A DNA stretch of 64,000 bases, taken from assembly GCA_965112735.1 (NCBI GenBank), contig OZ218956.1:2914001-2978000 (forward strand), written 5' to 3'. This document shows, piece by piece, positions 2,072 to 27,239 of the stretch. The notes beneath the pieces were generated by a model. It searched no databases. It was not told the origin of the DNA and worked only from the letters and a program-made list of their open reading frames with translations. The DNA is from Phaeosaccion multiseriatum (taxonomy: Eukaryota; Protista; Ochrophyta, other classes). How positions within the stretch are numbered: the stretch's first letter is position 1; every line of letters starts with the position of its first letter. The position numbers were made by a program, and so were the translations under genes.

Positions 2072-2437
2072 CCTGCTGGCGCTGGTGGTACACTCGATAC
2101 TGCTTCGCTGCCACAGCAACAGCGGCAGGCCGAGGAGGAGGAAGAAGAGCAGGAGGGGCAGCAGCAGCGGCAGGAGGAGGAGGAGAAGGGTCAGCGAGAG
2201 CAGCAGGAGAAGGTGGAGGAGGAGGAGGGTCTGCAAAATCAGCTGGAGGAGGTGGTGGTGGTGGTGGAGGAGGAGGAGGAGGAGGAGGAGGAGGAGGAGG
2301 AGGAGGAGGAGGAGGAGGAGGAGGAGGAGAGAACAGGGTTGAGTGTGGCTCGTGAAGCTGCGGCCCATCTGAGTGTGGCCTGCGGGGATGGGGACGGGCT
2401 GAGGCGGAGGAAGAACCTTCCACTGCCGCTGCCGTGA
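1..2437 (+). CDS. Membrane-anchored RING-H2 E3 ubiquitin ligase (TRC8/RNF145/Hrd1-like), 5'-truncated; exons ~<1-13, 81-183, 507-659, 1225-1385, 1712-2437
   Basis: Phase-compatible GT-AG exons encode hydrophobic segments (VRLVVALQLLVSYALLLALVILPML; AFKLAMGLLVIVVGLQL), then RING-H2 CAICMEDI...PCGHLFHASCLGRWLYRAKTCPQC and an acidic tail. The stop overlaps a (GTGA)n tract, so a further 3' exon is possible. Confidence 0.8.
838..1078. repeat. (CCT)n trinucleotide tract in a RING-gene intron
   Basis: Near-pure cct repeats, about 240 bp. Confidence 0.95.
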
Positions 2438-3528
2438 GTGAGTGAGTGAGTGAGTGAGTGAGTGAGTGAGTGAGTGAGTGAGTGAGTGAGTGTGTGAGTG
2501 AGCCCCGCCCTGGCTGGTCACGGTGGGGGGTCAGCACCACGCAGCATTCCCCTCCGACGGAAACGAAGAGGGCCACATACACGCACTCCTTGTGTATATA
2601 ATAGAGCAGGATTTGTTCTTTCCTCTCTACAAGAAGAGAGGGGAATTAATAAAGAGATACGAGGAGTAAAAAGCCCTAAGTACTACCATTACAACATGTA
2701 AAAAAGATACCCCTTTGATTCGGATAGGAGGCTGTGTTCTGTGGATTCTCATGTCGACGTACACAGAGACTTCATCCCCCATCCCACCCCCCACCCCTGC
2801 CCCAGACCTCGGAGTCCAACGCATGCCCCTGGCTGTGTGTGGGGGCTGCAAGCATTGCAACACCATACTGTACTCTCTACATGCCCATCTTTCATTCCTT
2901 CTTTCTTTCCCTGCTGTACTATTGCAAGGAGAAAAAGACTGACGGCCGCCCGTGCGGTGAGGAGGGAGGTACCGTACCACAGGATTCACTCCAAGACCCA
3001 TCAATCACAGACGAGGAACACACATGCCCATGCCGACTCCAGAGCCCCACACTGGGCCAAGCGAAGGCATGCGCGTTTCTCTCGGCTCTGCTTGATTGAA
3101 TGGGTCCCCAAGACCTCCCCTCCGTCCCACTCTCAGTCTTGAGTGCGCAAGCTTCGCCACTGAGGGCCTCTCTCCATCTGCCCCTCCTCGCGCAGCGCAT
3201 GGGAGCGAAACGCCAACCCGTTTGGCCTCACGGTCCACAAGAACGAACCCAAACCCAAACCTAACCGAAGCCTGCCTGCCTTTCGTAATGGCAAATCACG
3301 CGTGAATGTTTCTTCTGCACTCCTCCTTCTCCCTCCTCCACCCCCCCCCCCTCTCCCCTTCCTTATCCTCCTCTTCTTTCTCCGTGGTGTCGGGTGACAG
3401 GGCGGCATCTTTCGTTTAATGACGCAGAAAAGATCCCTACTCACACGTCCACATGCGCACACGCACCCATACACGCACGCACGCACCACCTCCCCCTCCC
3501 ACGCCGGCTGCAAGGCCTGCTCCGAGCC

Positions 3529-4559
3529 TTATGAGTAGACGAGGCGGAATATGTCATTATGTACATAGTACGCCCCCGGGCCTGTGGACACAAGCTGGAA
3601 GAACTCTGTGGCAGGCAGGAGCACACACAGCCAAAGAGAGAGAGAGGGAATACGTAATGGGGGGGAAGGGGTGAGACGACAGGAGAAGGGGGAATGATCG
3701 CGCTGAGAGAGAGCTTGGCAAGAGAGGGTGCGAGACAAGAGCATGCGTAAGCTGAGTTTCGTCATCACAATCGCAAAACCATACACCTCGACTCCCTCGG
3801 CCACTGTAGAACCTCTGGCGACCGCTACACACTCGGTCGTCACGACCAACACTTGGGCAGACCCGAGCGTGTCGTGTCCTGTAGGTGCACCTGATCAAAC
3901 CACACAAAACTGCCCCATCACCAACCCCAACCCCCCCCCAGCCCCCGCCAAATACACGTACCTGTAAAATGTAGTGGATTGTTGCTGTCAATCTGCAAGC
4001 ACAACGCCACGAAGGCGAGGATGGGGGGGAAGAGGTATGCCACACATTGAAGAGAGGCAGAGGAAGGGTTTGAATTGTGCTGGGGGTCCAATTGCCTGCA
4101 CCTGTGGCCGAAGCCAACCATAACATCACAATATCTATGCGAGTCTTGTAGTGCGGTCTGCCTCTCTAGCTCTTACCTTGACCTTCCCGACAGTAAAAAT
4201 GCAAATGGCGGTCGAGTTGGTCGACGGTTGGACGTCAACCTTATCCACAGTGAACTCCAGTTTTCCCACACTCTGTGCCATGGAAGCGAGAATCACATGC
4301 AATACGCAAGGGGGACACAGAGGGGACAAGGAAAGGTGCGTAAAAAGGAAGAGAGTGTGAAAAGAAGAATCACTTCCGCCTTTCAACCCACCGAGTACTT
4401 CTCGATGATAGCATCCGGGCCCTGCACTTGTGTTCCCTCGAAGGTGAGCATACTGCCCGGCTGGTAAAGGCCCTTGAGCTGCGCCACTCCGGCTGGACCC
4501 TGGGCGAACATACTGTAATAGTGCGCCACAAAGGCCTTGGCTACTTCTTCCGCTGCCAT
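3529..4559 (-). CDS. NTF2: Nuclear transport factor 2, 123 aa; exons 4559-4392, 4272-4177, 3992-3962, 3605-3529
   Basis: Spliced product MAAEEVAKAFVAHYYSMFAQGPAGVAQLKGLYQPGSMLTFEGTQVQGPDAIIEKYSSVGKLEFTVDKVDVQPSTNSTAICIFTVGKVKIDSNNPLHFTEFFQLVSTGPGAYYVHNDIFRLVYS. It has NTF2 hallmarks (F..HYY..F, LY...SMLTFEG, D.QP, V.NDIFRL). Exons total 372 nt, all GT-AG. Confidence 0.95.
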
Positions 4560-5277
4560 AGTGCTCCTCCCCTCCCTCCTCCAAGGCGGCTGCGCTGCTT
4601 GCTCCTCCTCCTCCTGCTGCTGCTGCTGCTACTGCTACTTCTGCTACTGCCACTGCTGCTCCTCCTACTGCTGCTATTCTGTTGCCACCGCTCCTGCTCC
4701 CTTGTATCTTCAGTACTCCTCCGCCTGGGGGGGGGAGAATCAAGCCAAGGGGCGGAAACCCGAAAAAGTTTTAGTTTGAGGACATTGAGACAGAGAGGAG
4801 GTGATAAAGGGGAATGAAAGGCGTCAGATAAAGCAAGGGAGCCACGACCCCAGCAGGTGAGAGCCAACAGGCGGAGAGCGGGAGGAGTTCTCTCTGTTCT
4901 TCCGATGGCTTTCCTGTGGTTGTCCGTAAACCCCGCTCTCTCTACAAAATCATTTTCTAACCTTCCATTATTTTCAAACGATGTCACCTTCCGTGAGGGC
5001 GCCACCCCCATCGTAGACTGACTCTGTGTGGCAGAGACATGATGGAGGAATGTCAAGATTGAGTTTTTTACTCTGTTTGCTCTCTCTTTAGCCTCCCCCC
5101 TCCCCCCCTCTTCTTTCTTCTCTAAGATCCTCTCCATCTGCCTCTCTCTCCTTCCCTCTCCTCTATCTCTACACACTCTCTCTGTCTCTCTCTATGCCCT
5201 CCCCCTCTGCCTCTCTCACACACTCCCTCTCTGCCCCCCCCCCCCCCCCCCCCCTCTATCTCTCTCTCTCTTCTGCG

Positions 5278-18768
<13,491 letters not shown>

Positions 18769-19664
18769 TTGCTTCGCCGACTGCTTCGCCCTCGCCCCAG
18801 GCCCAGGCGATGGTGAATCAGGGCAGGGCTGCTGCTGCTGCTGTATCACCAACTGCTGCGGCGGCTGCGGCTCCGGCTGCTGCTCCGTCTGTACCGGTGC
18901 CGGTCACCGCGAAAGCAGCGGCGGCGGCAGTAGCGGAAGGGTTCGTGTTGGAGCCGGATGCGAAACGCTCGCGAGTGGAGGGCGAGCGCGTACCCGCGGC
19001 GGCTCCTGGGCTGACCTCGGCATGATTGGGCATGGTTGGGCATGATTGGGGTAGGGCAAGGGAAGGGCAAGGGTCAAGGGTCAAGGGTCGGTTACATGTC
19101 AGGGGGAGAGAGCAGTCGAGGAGGGAAGGAGGGAGGGTATTATTAGATGTTAACCACTATTGATGAAGGAGGGGGAAAGAAACATTGACGAAGGAGGAAG
19201 GGGATTAGATGTTAAACCAATATTCCCAGGCGAGGTTTTTTATTTCTCTGGCTTCTGCCTCCCTCTTGCTTTCTGGCTTCTGGCTGGCTATGCTCGACCC
19301 CTGATACACTATCGCCCACATTCTCGATAGTGCGCTATCGGCCGCCGGCGATAGCGGATAGCGTAGCCAAACTGAACTATGATCCCCCCGGGTCACTGAC
19401 ATACTGTGAGGTGTGCTTTAGGGAAGGAATATGGGGGAAATATCCACAAAAGAGGGAAGGAGATGTTATAAATTGTTATGTGGATGGAGCGTGGAGTGTA
19501 TATCTCTAGTGGGTGGTGGCCTTCTTCTTGGGTAGAAGGCGGCGTTGCTTTTTGTTGAGTAGGACTTGTTGAAGGAGTCTGAAAGGAGGCGTGTTTTGAG
19601 CCAGCGTGATATTACAGAGTTGAACGAGTAGGTGGTGGCGAACAAGCGAACAAGCGGGACGGAG

Positions 19665-22600
19665 ATGGCGGAGGAGGCCCCAGGAGAGGGGCTGGAGCTG
19701 CAATGCCCGCAGTGCTATGAAGACTATCAGCCCTCCGGGCCCGGGTCGGAGGCCAAGAGAATCCCAAGGGCCCTGCACTGCGGGCATTTGATCTGTACCG
19801 AATGCGCCACCATTTTTGCAGAGGAGCAGAACTACTGCTGTAACAAGTGCTCTTTCGAGACGGTGCTCGACCCGAAGCTCCCTGCCGGGGGCTTGGCCGT
19901 TGCCGACTTGGCCGTTCTACCTCCGCCTCTCGCACTGCCTGCGGGGGAGGAGGTGCGACCACCGGAGGGCGCGAGTAACAAAGGAGGAGTGGAAGATGGA
20001 GAAGCGTCGGTGGCGGGGGACGTATTGACTCCCCGGACCAGGACTCCGAGTGCCCGGAGTGGCTCGATGGAGGGGAGCGATGGCGATGCGGATCTGGGGG
20101 CGACAGGGGGGGTGGGCGGTTCAGAGGGGACAGCACCAGCTCAAACAGCTCTGCTGAAGGAGTGAGGTGAGAGAGTATCATCAAAGACTTGGCTGTAGAG
20201 GACGGGCCATGTTTCTTTCTTTGCCTACTGAGGGCTTTACGAGGACGAATGAGTGACCCAGCATCCAACTGCAACTTCTCAGCATCTGTGCTGCCTCCTT
20301 CCTGTCCCCACGAACCCAAGAAGCGCTTCTTCTCACTTCTCACCCCATCGTTGTCTTTTTCCTCCTTTTGTCCCCCCCCCCCCAAGCCACCTGGATGAGT
20401 ATCTGAGGACGGCAGACATCCGGCGCGGAAGTGCAGGGGATAGCCTTGACTACCCAGCCTTTGCCACGCACACAGGTGCTTACCGCCCGGAGTTCGACGA
20501 GGACGGAGGAGGAGGGGGGGTGACCTGCATGCTCTGCGAGGAGGGGAGGGAGGAAGGCTACCTGTGTGCCCGGCACATGCGAGAGGACCAGGAGGGCGTG
20601 CTGCACGTGGGATCGATGCGTGGGGGCAGCGGCGACATTGATCAAAAGCACGTCATGAGGAAGCGGGTGTCCAAGCAGGGGGCGAGGCATTTTGGCGGCA
20701 AGGTGGCAGGCACCTCCCCCTTTCTGCTTCGGGTGAATCGGGACAAGCTAGAGCCGCAGCCCGAGCCGTCTTTGGAGGATGCGGATCCTGATTATTTGCG
20801 CAAACATTTCTTCCAGGACCAAAAGATGATCAGCGACGGCCTTGCGCTGTTCCTCATCTCCGAGTGCACCAAGAAGCTGCAGGAGGAGCCCAACGTGTTG
20901 CACATTCAGGCCCCTGTGAGGATTGTGGGCGACTTGCACGGGCAGTTCTTCGACCTTGTGAGCATGTTGGACACGTTTGGCACACCTTTGCAAGCGGACC
21001 ACAAGGGGCAGTACCTCTTTCTCGGGGTAAGTACCTTGCTTGCCGCTGTGGGCTTGCCTCTGTGGGGGTATGACTGTGGGGGTATGACTGTGGCTAGCGC
21101 GGGTATGGAACAACTCCCTCTCCTCCGTCCCCTCTTTGCCGCATCCCTTGCTGCTCACCACCACCCCTTTCAAGCACCTTGCTTGAAGAAAGGCCCCCAT
21201 CTCACACTTCAAGCCATCCATCCACATGCCACCAACCCCCCCTGCGCCATCGATGCCCCGGATTGTTAACCCCCCCACCAAACACAACTCTAACGACGGC
21301 CTGCCCCTCCTTCTCCCTCTCCCTCTACCCCACCACCGCAGGACTACGTGGATCGCGGCATGTTCTCCTGCGAGATACTGCTGTACCTTATGGCCCTAAA
21401 GTTGCGCTGCCCCGACCGAGTGCACCTCATCCGCGGCAATCACGAGTGCCGCAGCCTCACGCAGCACTTTGGCTTCAAGCAGGAGTGCGAGCGTAAGTGC
21501 GGCATCATCGCCTACAACTACTTTCTCAAGTGGTTCGAGCAGCTCCCGCTTTGTGCGGTGGTTACCAACGACCACGGAAAGTACTTTTGTACTCACGGTG
21601 AGTTTGAGTTTTGAGTTTGGGGCTCGTCTGTCTGGAGTTTTGCGCCGCCGCCGCGAATTAATTTCCGTGCACTTGTGTGCAGAGCCAGCAAGAGCAAAAG
21701 CGAGGGGGGTACTCACTCTTGCTGTGTTTCCTGTACTTCCCGCGAGCCCCCCTTCCCGCCAAGCAGAGAGAGGGAGAGGAGAGAGAGATAGAGACGGAGA
21801 AGTTACCCTGGGCTCCCGGCTCTGATCCTTTGGGACAGACACGCACGACGATGTTGTCTCTCTTCGTTCGTCTCTCCTCCCCATCTGAGCCAGCCCCTCA
21901 CCTCTACAATTGTAGCCTCCTCCGTCCACTTTTGCCCTCCTCAATCACGCTCATCTTTGTGCCTATCGAATCACCAATGGCTACACATTCACACACACAC
22001 ACACACACAGGCGGCATCTCCCCCGACCTCGACTCCATTGCGGACATTAACCTCATTAAGCGCGATGAGGAGCCCCCAAAGAACGGCATCATGTGCGACT
22101 TGTTGTGGGCAGACCCCGCCGACGACCCTGGCATCGTCAAGATTGAGGACCTTGAAGCAGAGGACTTGAGAGGGTTGCTCAACGACGACGGTTTCAAGAC
22201 CAACCCGTATCGGGGCTGCAGCGTGAGCTTCGGTATGCGCCCCGTGCTCAACTTTTTGGAGAACAATGGGTTGTTGACGGTGATTCGCGCACACGCGGTG
22301 CAGGAGCAGGGCTATTTCCGCCACTTTGAAAAGGTGCAGGAGCTGCTGCAGGCCAAAGATGATGGTGAGGAGGGGGAGGAGGAGAAGAAGAAGAAGCAAC
22401 GACTGCACGCGCACGCCAGCAGCGGAAACCCTCCCGAGGAGACGGGCCACGACATGTTGCTTGCAACGGAGACGAAGGAGCTCGCCACAGAGGGAGCTGA
22501 GGCTGCCTACCTCCCTCCCGCTATGGCTGGGAGTGGGCCTGCTTCTCCCGCTGGAACGGAGACTTCGTATCCAACTGAAGAGAGGTTTCTGATGGGCCAT

Positions 22601-24587
22601 GGCAATGGACGCGGCTTTGAAGACGAGAAGGAGTCGGGGGGGGATAAGGAGAACGAAGAGCAGGGGAGGGAGGGCATGCTGGTGCGGACGGCGGCACCGA
22701 GGGAGAGAAGCAACGGGCGAGCTCAAGCGCAGCAGGGACCCGTTTCGCCTTCGCCCATGTCTTGGTCTTTGAAGAACTTCTTCGGAACCGTTACGGCCGA
22801 CATTAAGAGCCTGATGAACCCGAACAGCCCTTCGGACAAGGCGGGCGGCTCCACCCCTTCGAAGCGGCCCAGGACGAAGACGTTGTTGTCTCCGGGGGGT
22901 TTGCTCCGGTCACGAGAGAGGGTGCCTTCTCCCGAGCCCTCCCCGTCACCACCGTCTTCGCCGTGCTCGGGAGACAGCAGCCCAGGGGGCAACCCCACCT
23001 TGGCCTATATCCGCAGAAAGGCCGCAATAGAGGAGCGGAGACGCAGCAACGGCGGTGGCAGCAGCGGTGGCGGTAGCCGCGGCAAAGGCAATGGTGTTGT
23101 GCATCGGGGGGCGGACGGATCACCGGTTATCTCTCCTCAAGGGTTGTTCTACTCTCCCTCCCACTCCTCCGGGCAGCGAAGCACAGACAAGAGCTTCTTC
23201 GGTGAGGGAAAGGAGGAAGAGCGGACCCGGAGGGCGAGCTCTCTCGTGGCGACGAAGGGAGAGGGAAGCGTAGCAGCAGCCGAAGCGCTGCGGAGGAGAT
23301 TGGAAGAGTTTGAGGAGGGTGCACAAGCACACGCTACAGCGGCTGCTCAGCTCCCGCCAGTCATCACGGTGTTCTCCGCCCCAAACTACTGCGGGAGGTA
23401 TGGCAACACGGCCGCGGTGCTGCTCATTAAGCAGACCGAGGCGGAGCCGGAGGTGGCTCAGTATCAGTGTGTGGTGGCACCCGTACCTGTGGACAGAGGC
23501 AATAGACACCAGGTATGTACGGTATGTATGTATGTATGTATGTATGTATGTATGTATGTATGTATGTACGGTACGTATATATGTATGTTTGTATGTATAT
23601 AACCACCGTCGCACCCAAGAGACACATGACTCGCGAACCGCCGTCACCCGTCACCCGTCACCCGTCACCCGTCACCCGTCACCCACTCGTACAAAGCTTG
23701 TTCTGTTCCCGCTTGTCCCCTCCTCCCTGCCGCTCTCGTTGTTGGGTTGGCTCTTGCTTTGGCTCTTGCTTTGGCTCTGGTCACCACCATCATGCCCATC
23801 CCATTGCGCATGCATTTTCACACTCGTAATTCTCCTTCCTTCCTTCCTTCCTTCCTTCCTTCCTTCCTTCCTTCACCACCCCCATTTCCCGCCCTTGGCG
23901 AACTGTGACTTGACCGTTACAATACAGGCCCACATTAGTGCGCTGTTGGACACTTGCCCATACATGCCCACGACTTTCAGAGACTTTGTGAGGATCGCGA
24001 TCCGCTTAGGACCGGCGCCACCGCTGTTGGAGTCCGAGGCGGGAGGAGGGGAGATGGCACCAGAAGCATCAGGAGGAGCAGCAGGAGGAGCTGGTGCCGT
24101 GGCAGGGCCAGGGGCGCAGAGTACTGGCGGGATGGGACAGACGGAGGCCGGAGGGGACGGAAAGGAGGGGCAAAGGCATGGAGAGGCTTCCGGGGAGAAG
24201 GGGGGGAGAGGAGGCGGAGGAGGAGAAGGAGGGGAAGGATCGCCTGGAGCAAGCAAAGCTGGGAGTCAAAATGGCGGAGGATTGACCCTACGGCCCGGCG
24301 CTGTGGACTTAGTGGTAACTCCTGGAGGGGCGTCGGGAGGAAGCGCAGGAGGGGGAGGGGGCTCGGGCGACAAGGCTCTTGTTGGGCGCTCCCCCGTCTC
24401 TCCTCGGCCCGTCAAGGTGAGAGGGTGAGCTCCGCACCTTCACTGACTTCAGGGAGATGGGGGGGAGGGGCTGTATGATTCGGTTTGACGTGGCCGAGCA
24501 CATGTCTCCCAGCTTTACCATACCATTCCCACGATTCGATTCTGCATGAGTTGTGGCTAGCTTGTATCTGTCTAGTTGTCGTCGTCG

Positions 24588-24630
<43 letters not shown>

Positions 24631-24740
24631 TATCATCATCATCATCGTCATCATCATCATTAGCATCATTAGCATCATCATGACCATCATCATCATCATC
24701 ACCATCATTATCATCATCATCATCATCATCATCACCATCA

Positions 24741-24794
<54 letters not shown>

Positions 24795-26891
24795 TTATGT
24801 CAATGGAAGGTCGCGCTCCGTGCACCCCTTGTGTGCCACAGCCCTTTTCGATGTACAAGCACCCCACCCCACCCCGTCACTCCCCTCCCCCCCCCCCTCC
24901 TCTCTCTTTTGTCTTTTTGTCCTCCTTCGCGGGCCCTCCACTCTCCTCCAGATCATGTCTGAGCACGATATTTACGAGCAGCGGGTAAGTGAGAGTTGGC
25001 AGAAGCAGTAGCAGCAGCAGCAGCTGCTGGAAGGGAAGGGAACGGAAGGAGTGCATGTATAAATGAGCGACTGAATAGCTTTTCATCGCAGCGGGCGGCG
25101 TGCAACAAGAGGAAAGCACCCCCCCCCCCCCGTTAAGGAGGATCTTGGTCTTGAACTGGGTCGCCGCCTCACTCCTCAGTGCTCGGCCCCTACTATGAGG
25201 TGCCCTTTTTGTTGACAGGGACGCCCCGTGTGTCTCCTTGCCTCCCGCCCCCCGCTGCCTCTGTCTCTGCCTCTCGCCGTCTCTGCCCCTCCCTCCCTGT
25301 CTCCCTCCCTCCCTCCCTCCCTCCCTCCCTCCCTCCCTCCCTCCCTCTCCTCTCTCAGGCGGCGCACGACCGCATCCATGAGCTTCACCCCGACAAGCTC
25401 CAGCGCATGACGGAGCAGCCCGCAGCCGCCGAAGTGCTGCAGGAGGTGAAGGAGGACGCCATTATCCCTAGCAGTGCCACGTTGAGCGTCAGTCAGCTCA
25501 CGCACATCTTTGGGGGCGGCGGTGCGAGTAGGAGAGACTCGTGTCCAGCGGAGATAAGTGGAGGAGGGGGGGGCGAGCAGAGCAGCGTGCGGGGGGGTGA
25601 AGAACAGTACCTCGCTGAGAAGGGCGGAGTCAGGAATCTGAAAAGGTATGTATGTAACGGGTACGTAAGGGGTACGGTGTTGGATGGGGGCTGGGATGAT
25701 GGATGGAGCACGGCCAGGCTTCTTGTAAATGGTTGATTTGGAGTGTGCTTCGCCGTTGAATTTAGTCGAAATGGTTACTGACGCTGTTCTGAATTGGAGA
25801 GAGACGGTTACTGACGCTGCGCCACCTTGTCCTCGGACACCGTTCGCTCGCCTATGCTGTGCTCCTCCCTCCCTCCCTGCTTGCCTCCCTCCTCCCCCTC
25901 TCCCTTCCTCCCTCCCTCCCTTCCTCCCTCCCTTCCTTCCTTCCTGCCCTCTCGGCACAGAGCCTATGAAAAGGAGAATCGCTCCCTTCGCGCCATGTCG
26001 CTGGTGTCTGTAGAGCGTCAGAAGATTGAAAAGATTGAAGGCGACCTCGCCAAAAGCGCCCAAAGATCGCGCCTGCAGAAGCGGCAGGGCATGGGGGTGG
26101 CAGCAGATGGCGCGGTAAGCCTATCAAGCACCCTGCCGAGTGACGGATCAGCTGTGATGTTCTCCCCCTCTGCGGGGAATTTCTCCCTGCAGGGTGAGGA
26201 CATGGGGGAGGAGGAGCGAGAGGCAGCGGTGCGGAGATCTGCGGTGGAGAAGGGGGTTGAGATGTTCGAGAAGCCCAAGAAGGACCGCAAGAGCAAGGAG
26301 CTGGCGGAGTGGTTCAAGAGGAGGGGCAGGAAGGCGAGTACGTCCAGCTCCACGCTCGCAGAGGGCAGGTACCTGAGTAACATTCGCTCTCCTCCGGTAG
26401 GAGGGGGAGGAGAGGGCGGAGGAGGGGAAGGCCAAGGACAAGGGCCTGAGGAGGCGGAGTCTGGGGACTCAGGAGGAGGAAGGAGCATGAGGGAGAAGGA
26501 GGAGGGTGAGGGTGAGGGTGTACAAAGTAGGGAGCAGGGCGGCGGCGTTGGGCTTGCCAGACACGTCAAGGCCATTCCATCGCAGATGCGCTTGGAGGCC
26601 TTGGGGCCACCGGTGGACAGCGACCAGCGCAGGATGAGGAAGGCTTCGTCGGTATCGGAGGAGGGGTTCGGGGGGGAAGAGGAAGGGCATGAAGCCGGCA
26701 AGGGGAGCGGGGGCAGTGGGGGGGGGGGGGCATCGGATGAGGCGGGTAAAGAGCCAGAGTCGACCCAGCTACACACGCAGCTACACACCCCGCCCTCGCG
26801 CGGAGGAGGCGGAAGAGGTGCGCTGGAGGTGTCGTTCAGCACGCCTTCTCCACGACTTGGGCAAGGAGGAGGAGAGCAATCACCAGCAGCC

Positions 26892-26924
<33 letters not shown>

Positions 26925-27239
26925 GAAGCACCAGAGCCGACTTCAGTGGAGCCGGCCCCGCTGCTGGGCCCCGACGAGCAGACCTTCACGCATGCGGAGA
27001 TGCTGGGGTTGAAGCTGCTCTTCTCTCTCATGAACCTCAACGACTCGGACTACATTGATTCCGCAGCACTGCAGATGTATGCGGAGAACGAGAACGACCA
27101 CGGCCTCGCTAAGGAGGTACAAGCGTGCATTGACGCAGCCGACGCGGACGGAGACGGCGTGATTGGTCTCATGGACTTTACGTGCTTCGCCGGACGGCTC
27201 AAGTGCTGCTATGAGCGGGGCTGGCTCACGGGCATCTGA
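19665..27239 (+). CDS. Calcineurin-A-like PPP Ser/Thr phosphatase fused to N-terminal RING-HC (plus possible B-box) and C-terminal EF-hand pair; exons ~19665-20161, 20387-21026, 21342-21597, 22011-23512, 23928-24416, 24952-24984, 25359-25644, 25961-27239
   Basis: PPP motifs GDLHG, GDYVDRG, RGNHE, HGG, DLLWADP, RAH, SAPNY. Calcineurin-like N-terminal LRKHFF..., NPYRGCSVSFG and autoinhibitory-like YEQRAAHDRIHELHP. RING: CPQC...IPRALHCGHLICTEC...CNKC. EF loop DADGDGVIGLMDF. Junctions are phase-compatible. Confidence 0.88.

Follow-up and report, generated by a model that had tools for sequence, protein, structure and literature searches.

A putative Ca2+-regulated phosphatase of calcineurin descent with an N-terminal RING-knuckle module and a C-terminal EF-hand pair in an ochrophyte alga

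We analysed a window of 64,000 nucleotides (the whole stretch of DNA) from Phaeosaccion multiseriatum (contig OZ218956.1, positions 2,914,001 to 2,978,000 of the forward strand) and focused on the gene at positions 19665-27239 of the window (+ strand), for which an original prediction from the sequence alone had proposed a single chain joining a RING, a calcineurin-type catalytic domain, an autoinhibitory-like motif and an EF-hand pair. Our results make it probable that this is one gene of a stramenopile (ochrophyte-type) alga, coding for an autoinhibited, calcineurin-derived phosphatase with its EF-hand sensor in cis and a RING-knuckle module. The gene model consists of eight phase-consistent exons with 4983 nt, that is, 1660 codons plus TGA (established by hand and by script), and encodes, in this order, a C3HC4 RING, an RLxxFL-like motif, a CCCH zinc knuckle, a PPP catalytic domain, the motif CPYMPTTFRDF, the autoinhibitory motif DRIHELHP, a linker and an EF-hand pair. 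The phase-consistent model, the conservation of this order and the existence of homologues with a single open reading frame (ORF) bear out the proposed chain, and all of the features originally listed were recovered where they had been placed, on the + strand. We class the product as a putative Ca2+-regulated PPP phosphatase of calcineurin descent, and proteins with the RING-knuckle module and the autoinhibitory element are already public. The exons and the features within them are the following (GC3 is the GC content at third codon positions).

19665-20161, + strand: exon 1, with the start codon, the RING and a low-complexity tail, ending at the donor GGA/GTGAGG
19704-19850, + strand: C3HC4 RING of the TRIM type, with the ligands C14, C17, C39, H41, C44, C47, C59 and C62
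20387-21026, + strand: exon 2, with the HLDEYL motif, the CCCH knuckle and the start of the catalytic domain at GDLHGQ, ending in ...YLFLG (from homologue alignments)
20526-20576, + strand: CCCH zinc knuckle CMLCEEGREEGYLCARH, with the spacing C-x2-C-x9-C-x2-H
21342-21597, + strand: exon 3, with DYVDRG and GNHE (Pfam Metallophos, E 4.6e-13; ∼71% identity to brown-algal orthologues by blastp)
22011-23512, + strand: exon 4, with (H)GGISP, RGCS and RAHAVQEQGY, a large insertion and then PPVITVFSAPNYCGRYGN
22361-23347, + strand: low-complexity insertion of ∼330 amino acids, rich in E, K, G, S and P, in the beta12-beta13 loop between RAH and SAPNY (open frame, GC3 0.69)
23928-24416, + strand: exon 5, with the family hallmark AHISALLDTCPYMPTTFRDFVRIAIRLGP at 23928-24014 and a low-complexity remainder
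24952-24984, + strand: exon 6, a 33-nt mini-exon encoding IMSEHDIYEQR, the first half of the autoinhibitory-like motif
25359-25645, + strand: exon 7, with the autoinhibitory-like core AAHDRIHELHPDKL at 25359-25400 and a second conserved motif, ATLSVSQLTHIF, at 25476-25511
25961-27239, + strand: exon 8, with a low-complexity linker, the EF-hand pair and the stop codon TGA at 27237-27239
27009-27188, + strand: EF-hand pair, with a degenerate EF1 (NLNDSDYIDSAA) and a canonical EF2 (DADGDGVIGLMD) with Asp at loop position 12

All seven introns are of the GT..AG type and 225-535 nt long, with strong donors (in order, GTGAGG, GTAAGT, GTGAGT, GTATGT, GTGAGA, GTAAGT and GTATGT) and pyrimidine-rich acceptors. 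GC3 lies between 0.68 and 0.81 in seven of the eight exons and is 0.56 in the mostly low-complexity exon 5; the overall GC content of the introns is 0.49-0.62, and that of the flanks falls to ∼0.49. DNA of the locus is held by four public runs from one sample, all of them genomic, as seen from their contigs running straight through the introns, and the few apparent splice joints in these contigs are 20-23-nt low-complexity artefacts with non-GT-AG ends. Given that the public runs are genomic only, we tested the single-gene model by comparison with homologues. Five of the seven junctions (exons 1/2, 2/3, 3/4, 4/5 and 6/7) are supported in this way. Splicing restores GDYVDRG across exons 2 and 3 (G/DYVDRG), HGG across exons 3 and 4 (H/GG) and the post-catalytic motif DRGNRHQ/AHISALLDTCPYMP across exons 4 and 5, while exons 6 and 7 together restore a motif that is contiguous in orthologues (EHDIYEQR/AAHDRIHELHP versus “HDLYELEAAHDRINELHP”, and AHDLYELEAAHDRINELHP in brown algae). 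Exon 2 opens exactly at HLDEYL, which corresponds to the RLxxFL motif located between the RING and the knuckle in homologues; its frame has no upstream ATG, and translation from the first ATG in frame would begin within the knuckle, leaving no independent start that retains the conserved motifs. Start and stop also match the family, with 13 residues ahead of the first Cys and 37 residues counted from the beginning of the last EF loop to the C terminus.

The exons were searched singly, and the structural work was done on the closest single-ORF homologue, P0005, as a proxy. When the exons were compared by phmmer with 150 representatives, the RING, the catalytic domain, the CPYMP motif and the EF-hand pair were found to be co-linear in P0005, P0032, P0034, P0026, P0031, P0058 and P0085, with the RING exon placed at the extreme N terminus, the catalytic exons in the middle, exon 5 just after SAPNY and exon 8 at the extreme C terminus. 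Pfam confirmed the RING, Metallophos and EF-hand_7 domains in these co-linear homologues. P0005 (1077 amino acids) and P0032 (983 amino acids) are single uninterrupted ORFs on metagenome contigs (L001, positions 3001-6234, and L002, positions 2200-5151, respectively), showing that the RING-phosphatase-EF chain is not an artefact of gene modelling. In dozens of homologues each part of the gene pairs with the equivalent part in the same order, an agreement that goes beyond chance. The contig of P0005, a 45.8-kb sequence from JGI 3300068088, is eukaryotic and intron-poor, and the intron-free ORF lies beside genes for BEACH, SDR, IQ and WW-domain proteins; the same protein is also found on a contig of the 2025-era SRA run SRR33577138.

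An HMMER scan of 1.84 billion representatives with exon 4 yielded many long relatives. A word-index protein search with exon 2, whose length window excludes such long relatives, returned three short calcineurin fragments from the catalytic third. The homologues come from Pylaiella, Ectocarpus (two RING paralogues), Scytosiphon, Cladosiphon (two paralogues), Chrysoparadoxa, Mallomonas, metagenomes and other sources, and the best blastp matches, from Ectocarpales, Chrysoparadoxa and a metagenome eukaryote, are equally distant from the gene, with 50-72% identity in the conserved parts. An architecture search had been suggested as a check of the original prediction, and many homologues indeed share the domain order; their sources are brown algae, Chrysoparadoxa, Mallomonas and metagenomes. 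The possibility raised at that time, that the architecture might already be described as common, turned out to be half right: it is common in public sequence data, whereas no description of a RING-calcineurin-EF or calcineurin-EF family was found in the literature by full-text search, which leaves subscription journals largely uncovered, so that this absence is not proof. The literature covered included work on the oomycete phosphatome, Phytophthora RNA-seq, calmodulin and calmodulin-like (CaM/CML) genes of Saccharina, the evolution of the endoplasmic reticulum Ca2+ system and the structure of PPEF. The database names of family members are “unnamed protein product,” “hypothetical” or a generic phosphatase designation.

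To place the relatives, we inferred a FastTree phylogeny from 166 catalytic domains, with the gene itself outside the tree and no PP1 or PP2A outgroup. The tree separates 76 sequences, referred to here as the CPYMP family after their post-catalytic motif, from 90 canonical calcineurin A-like sequences (SH-like support of 97); in the absence of a PP1/PP2A outgroup, the family may have arisen either beside calcineurin A, as its sister, or deep within it. All members with a RING or a knuckle fall into one clade (support of 92), in which the gene's best blastp matches, P0004, P0005 and P0166-P0168, form a subclade with a support of 100, and a second RING subclade also contains brown-algal and Chrysoparadoxa members. 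The RING-less members include oomycete and Aureococcus proteins. Different N-terminal modules occur as well, with P0182 carrying a protein kinase domain (PF07714) and P0199 a CH domain (PF00307). The best explanation is that the CPYMP family branched from calcineurin A, keeping the autoinhibitory element, losing a recognisable calcineurin B-binding helix and carrying a Ca2+ sensor in cis, and that one subfamily, this gene included, gained the N-terminal RING and knuckle. An odd entry in this otherwise stramenopile-rich family is P0102, which is listed as a protein of the chytrid Batrachochytrium salamandrivorans. P0166 (Pylaiella) and P0167 (Cladosiphon) extend 250-317 amino acids past the EF-hand pair, versus 26-127 amino acids in most members, and these C-terminal extensions may be run-on gene models.

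The catalytic domain, encoded by exons 2 to 4, contains all the PPP signatures, namely, GDLHGQ, GDYVDRG, GNHE, HGG, RGC, RAH and SAPNY, and Pfam Metallophos is matched by the exons with E values of 4.6e-13 and 3e-4. Among solved structures, exon 4 is nearest to calcineurin A (phmmer against the PDB, E 1e-20 to 5e-22), followed by PP1 (1e-14). Similarly, the catalytic domain of P0005 scores 222-248 bits against calcineurin A and at most 187 against PP1, and the P0005 model superposes on full-length calcineurin with a VIA Z of ∼48 and a root mean square deviation (rmsd) of 1.9 A at 40% identity. The alignment of exon 4 to the PDB sequences skips query residues 117-454 (∼340 residues), between RAH...GY and PPVITVFSAPNY, in keeping with the large insertion. 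This insertion is disordered and specific to the lineage. The loop concerned, beta12-beta13, has ∼20 amino acids in orthologues and carries insertions of 50-130 amino acids in several other members of the family.

After the catalytic domain, CPYMPT[ST]F[RK][DE]F forms the hallmark of the whole family, and the looser pattern P[YF][MIL]P occurs in 87 proteins. The corresponding segment of the gene had originally been labelled as similar to a calcineurin B-binding helix, a label that we do not retain. It is a family-specific motif without detectable similarity to that helix: the phmmer search of the PDB with exon 5 gave no match even at an E value of 10, the motif aligns with fungal and Plasmodium calcineurin A by position only, and the structural alignments of the P0005 model with B-bound calcineurin A extend no further than chain residue ∼347 and do not reach the B-binding helix. 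The reading as a calcineurin B-binding helix was rejected on these grounds.

Further downstream, the motif Y..A.A.D.INE[MLV]HP is found in 17 of the 48 family members listed by our script and resembles the ...SDMTNERMP of a basidiomycete calcineurin A. The autoinhibitory-like motif of the original prediction proved to be a conserved hallmark of the family. In the AlphaFold model of P0005, built from a 69-sequence alignment, the predicted local distance difference test (pLDDT) score exceeds 90 in the catalytic core and is 76-87 in the autoinhibitory segment. The five best structural matches of this model are autoinhibited full-length calcineurin entries (4or9, 4ora, 1aui, 4orb and 4il1), with model residues 212-678 aligned to chain residues 30-486 in 1aui and up to 495 in 4or9 (324-329 residues aligned), versus the next 15 listed calcineurin entries, which are aligned only up to model residue ∼560 (306-314 residues). 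The autoinhibitory segment of P0005 is thus predicted to superpose on the calcineurin autoinhibitory helix and to lie in the active site as in 1AUI and 4OR9. About 40-60 residues after the autoinhibitory motif, many members contain a further motif, hSVxxL[RT]xxF, represented in exon 7 by ATLSVSQLTHIF and elsewhere by, for example, ISVRDLRKRF and ITVSELRNRF; it forms a strand and a helix in the P0005 model (pLDDT of ∼79) and may be a target of the EF-hand pair or a phosphosite.

The RING in exon 1 is complete, with the spacing C-x2-C-x21-C-x-H-x2-C-x2-C-x11-C-x2-C. Calling it TRIM-like was justified, given the full C3HC4 pattern and the TRIM32 RING as its best solved relative by sequence (E 0.003). 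In 13 sequences, seven of the eight ligands, all of them Cys, are nearly invariant, and the His is replaced by Asp in P0032 and P0058. AlphaFold predicts the RING within the N-terminal 215 residues of P0005 with a pLDDT of ∼90, and Foldseek matches this model to TRIM23, TRIM32, TRIM2, TRIM21 and TRIM25 over the RING alone (∼65 columns, rmsd of ∼2 A). The second Cys/His-rich element, originally described as B-box-like, is better described as a CCCH zinc knuckle. Its ligands (C, C, C and H) are nearly invariant in 25 homologues, where the usual spacing is C-x4-(G)C-x9-11-C-x2-H, and homologues give weak Pfam matches to Zf_WRKY19 in this segment (E 0.008 and 0.069). The Pfam B-box model (zf-B_box) is absent from the gene and from the scanned homologues even at an E value of 10. 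Together with the presence of only four ligands, and with Foldseek covering no more than the ∼65 RING columns even against the RING-B-box structure of TRIM21 (5olm), this led us to reject a B-box.

At the C terminus, the EF-hand pair finds calmodulin-type matches in the PDB (best E 5e-6), and of the ten homologues scanned, seven exceed the Pfam cut-off for EF-hand_7. The EF2 loop residues D1, D3, D5, G6, I/V8 and D12 are retained in 48-66 of the 71 family members, and EF1 is variable.

Taken together, these features suggest how the enzyme most likely works. At rest, the autoinhibitory helix is predicted to occupy the active site. Binding of Ca2+ to the conserved EF2 loop would let the EF-hand pair grip a helix in the regulatory region and withdraw the autoinhibitory peptide, following a logic similar to that of Ca2+-dependent protein kinases (CDPKs) or PPEF and operating without a separate calcineurin B. 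The RING-knuckle module could recruit a ubiquitin-charged E2 enzyme (E2~ubiquitin), so that the phosphatase itself or its docked substrates would be ubiquitinated, or it could serve in dimerisation or targeting. The full proposal, in which release of the peptide by the cis EF-hand pair would switch on dephosphorylation together with ubiquitination through the RING, both directed at the same docked substrates or at the enzyme itself, is speculative and, in our judgement, rather unlikely to hold in all its parts; the coupling of ubiquitination to Ca2+-regulated dephosphorylation put forward in the original prediction is kept here as putative.

A number of observations weigh against a single, active and Ca2+-switched enzyme, and they concern the gene model as well as its parts. 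No RNA run was found among the public runs that hold DNA of the locus, and every junction is based on homology and splice signals. In addition, the G-run at 20106-20112 has 7 G in the assembly and 8 G in the contigs of three of the four runs (X1-X3), so exon 1 may contain an error of one G, which a neighbouring donor compensates. If the run has 7 G, the donor at 20161 joins exon 2 in frame; 8 G shifts the frame, and a donor 5 nt downstream (GAG/GTGAGA, exon end at 20166) then joins exon 2 in frame and without a stop. The RING exon thus splices in frame at either length, with the choice of donor depending on the true one. One could still suppose two genes, a stand-alone RING protein at 19665-20165 that ends at an in-frame TGA and a separate downstream phosphatase, joined only by coincidence, since the unspliced RING ORF does reach a stop at 20163-20165, the public runs with the locus are genomic, and some database models of relatives, e.g., P0004 and P0167, have no RING. 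This is very improbable, given that the gap between the RING ORF and exon 2 is just 225 nt and pyrimidine-rich, with GTGAG at one end and the first AG after the tract at the other, that the motif at the opening of exon 2 separates RING from knuckle in homologues, with no in-frame ATG upstream of it, that P0005 and P0032 hold RING, knuckle and phosphatase in one uninterrupted ORF, and that the RING and knuckle members make up one clade of the catalytic-domain tree. The gene might also be a decaying or inactive paralogue. The ∼330-amino-acid insertion beside the active site could impair activity and is the largest at the beta12-beta13 site among the family members examined, and the RING diverges at its E2-contact sites as does the knuckle in its spacing (C-x2-C instead of C-x4-C). 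Against decay, the frame of ∼1660 codons and all the catalytic motifs are intact, the GC3 of the insertion (0.69) is that of coding sequence, and other members also carry insertions, of 50-130 amino acids, in the same loop; we therefore see little chance that this copy is degenerate.

In RINGs that bind an E2, the residue between Cys1 and Cys2 is usually Ile or Val, Cys7 is followed by Pro and there is a basic “linchpin” residue. The RING of the gene has Gln at the Ile/Val site (C-P-x-C), Asn in place of the Pro that most homologues carry in the last C-P-x-C pair and no basic linchpin after the last Cys, which makes its E3 ligase activity uncertain, and its Pfam match is weak (zf-RING_UBOX, E 6e-4, under the cut-off). 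There is accordingly a substantial possibility, though somewhat short of an even one, that the RING-knuckle of the gene as modelled is a zinc-stabilised dimerisation or targeting module and not a ubiquitin ligase, in which case no ubiquitination would be coupled to dephosphorylation. The replacement of the E2-contact hydrophobic residue by Gln or Asn in the gene and its nearest orthologues, the missing Pro and linchpin Arg/Lys, the Asp in place of the ligand His in P0032 and P0058 and the fact that the closest structures are TRIM RINGs, which function as dimers, are all consistent with this. On the other hand, all eight ligands are retained in the gene and in most homologues, the fold is predicted with confidence (pLDDT of ∼90) and is closest to the RINGs of active TRIM E3 ligases, several of which were solved with E2~ubiquitin, and many homologues, including those of other subclades, retain Val/Ile and Pro at the E2-contact sites. 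From the sequence, E3 ligase activity of the RING is plausible, with about an even chance. As to the Ca2+ switch, the placement of the autoinhibitory helix is a prediction for a homologue by AlphaFold, which was trained on calcineurin structures; the EF-hand_7 match of the gene falls below the cut-off (E 5.7e-6, 27 bits versus a cut-off of 30), its EF1 has no acidic residue at position 12, and its EF2 has Asp instead of Glu there, which lowers Ca2+ affinity or selectivity in other EF-hands. The EF-hand pair could then have a permanent structural role, comparable to that of calcineurin B or of a myosin light chain, or form a Mg2+ site, with activation left to external calmodulin or to phosphorylation. 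Such a role would fit the degenerate EF1 of the gene and many other members, the Asp at position 12 of EF2 in 66 of the 71 members, the single pair versus four EF-hands in calcineurin B or calmodulin and the long, disordered, Ser-rich linkers, which could carry regulatory phosphosites. We regard it as doubtful, because the EF2 ligand sites are conserved far above the remainder of the linker, the pair invariably follows the autoinhibitory motif in the chain, an arrangement shared with CDPK-type switches, and no IQ or calmodulin-binding domain was detected by Pfam in the exons or in ten homologues.

Some further observations concern the locus and its assembly. The region 5' of the ATG (19026-19664) is AT-richer and follows the end of another + strand gene, a composition and position as expected for a promoter. 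This upstream neighbour (17980-18768, + strand) has a Cys/His-rich end (CPHHSCTTC...YCSPKC) that resembles a PHD or zinc-finger tail. The introns of the phosphatase gene are packed with microsatellites (23513-23600, 23836-23872, 24580-24795, 25290-25350 and 25860-25945), among them (ATGT)n and (CCTT)n repeats, ∼215 bp of (ATC)n and, immediately before two of the acceptors, (CCCT)n tracts; short-read contigs break at these repeats. The fourth run, X4, agrees with the assembly on 7 G at 20106-20112 but carries deletions of 1-2 bases at the homopolymers at 20514, 21236 and 24459. These homopolymer discrepancies suggest a long-read-based assembly with residual indel errors, able to shift frames in other G/C runs.

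Calcineurin, the classic example of a phosphatase activated by Ca2+, is invariably described as a heterodimer with an additional requirement for calmodulin. Under the interpretation that we prefer, an autoinhibited phosphatase with its own EF-hand sensor, stramenopile algae and their relatives would possess a large sister family that kept the calcineurin autoinhibitory switch, placed the sensor in the same chain and, in one clade, added a RING. If the mechanism holds, the protein would be a phosphatase counterpart of the CDPKs and a natural fusion of a phosphatase and a ubiquitin ligase, with a bearing on Ca2+ signalling in brown algae and other ochrophytes, on the evolution of calcineurin regulation and on the design of a compact Ca2+-gated tool. 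With both activities present, a single Ca2+ pulse would remove phosphorylation marks and at the same time start a ubiquitin timer; no such signalling module has been described in animals, fungi or plants. Given that the family is annotated only generically, naming and testing it would improve the annotation of many genomes.

Among known systems, calcineurin A has the closest catalytic domain, both in sequence and in predicted structure, with all the motifs for metal and phosphate ligands, and its C-terminal autoinhibitory peptide of the type ...D.INE.(M/H)P is retained. The family differs from it in lying across a well-supported split from canonical calcineurin A, in having CPYMPTTFRDF and two short helices in place of the B-binding helix, in carrying its Ca2+ sensor in cis and, in the RING members, in the N-terminal RING and knuckle. 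No calmodulin-binding domain was matched by Pfam in the gene, where this region is of low complexity and no dedicated predictor was applied. The phosphatases PPEF, RdgC and PP7 similarly combine a PPP catalytic domain with a following EF-hand tandem in the same chain; autoinhibition of RDGC is relieved by Ca2+, and in PPEF calmodulin and the EF tandem together remove the inhibition (PMC11962071). The family described here has instead a calcineurin-type C-terminal peptide and not an extended IQ helix held by calmodulin. In line with this, Pfam found no IQ motif in the exons or in ten homologues, with a RING at the N terminus instead, and no PPEF/RDGC chain was among the best 60 sequence matches or the best 50 structural matches, which comprise calcineurin, PP5, PP1 and PP2A. 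Membership in PPEF was rejected on both counts.

The TRIM E3 ligases TRIM32, TRIM23, TRIM2, TRIM21 and TRIM25 are the closest to the RING in sequence and predicted fold; they differ in their B-box, coiled coil and TRIM-type C-terminal substrate domain, none of which we find here, the second zinc motif being a four-ligand knuckle. The RING-less EF phosphatases of stramenopiles, from oomycetes (“Serine/threonine-protein phosphatase” entries) and from Aureococcus (“calcium-dependent protein serine/threonine phosphatase”), belong to the same family by tree, motif and EF-hand pair, with the P[YF][MIL]P-type motif being CPYMP in most family members and TLPF[LI]P in oomycetes, and are distinguished by lacking the RING and knuckle module. 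Finally, the comparison with CDPK-type kinases is a functional analogy only, given that the present protein is a phosphatase and not a kinase, with one EF-hand pair instead of four EF-hands and with long disordered linkers, but both types unite a catalytic domain, a pseudosubstrate or autoinhibitory peptide and an EF-hand sensor in cis within one chain.

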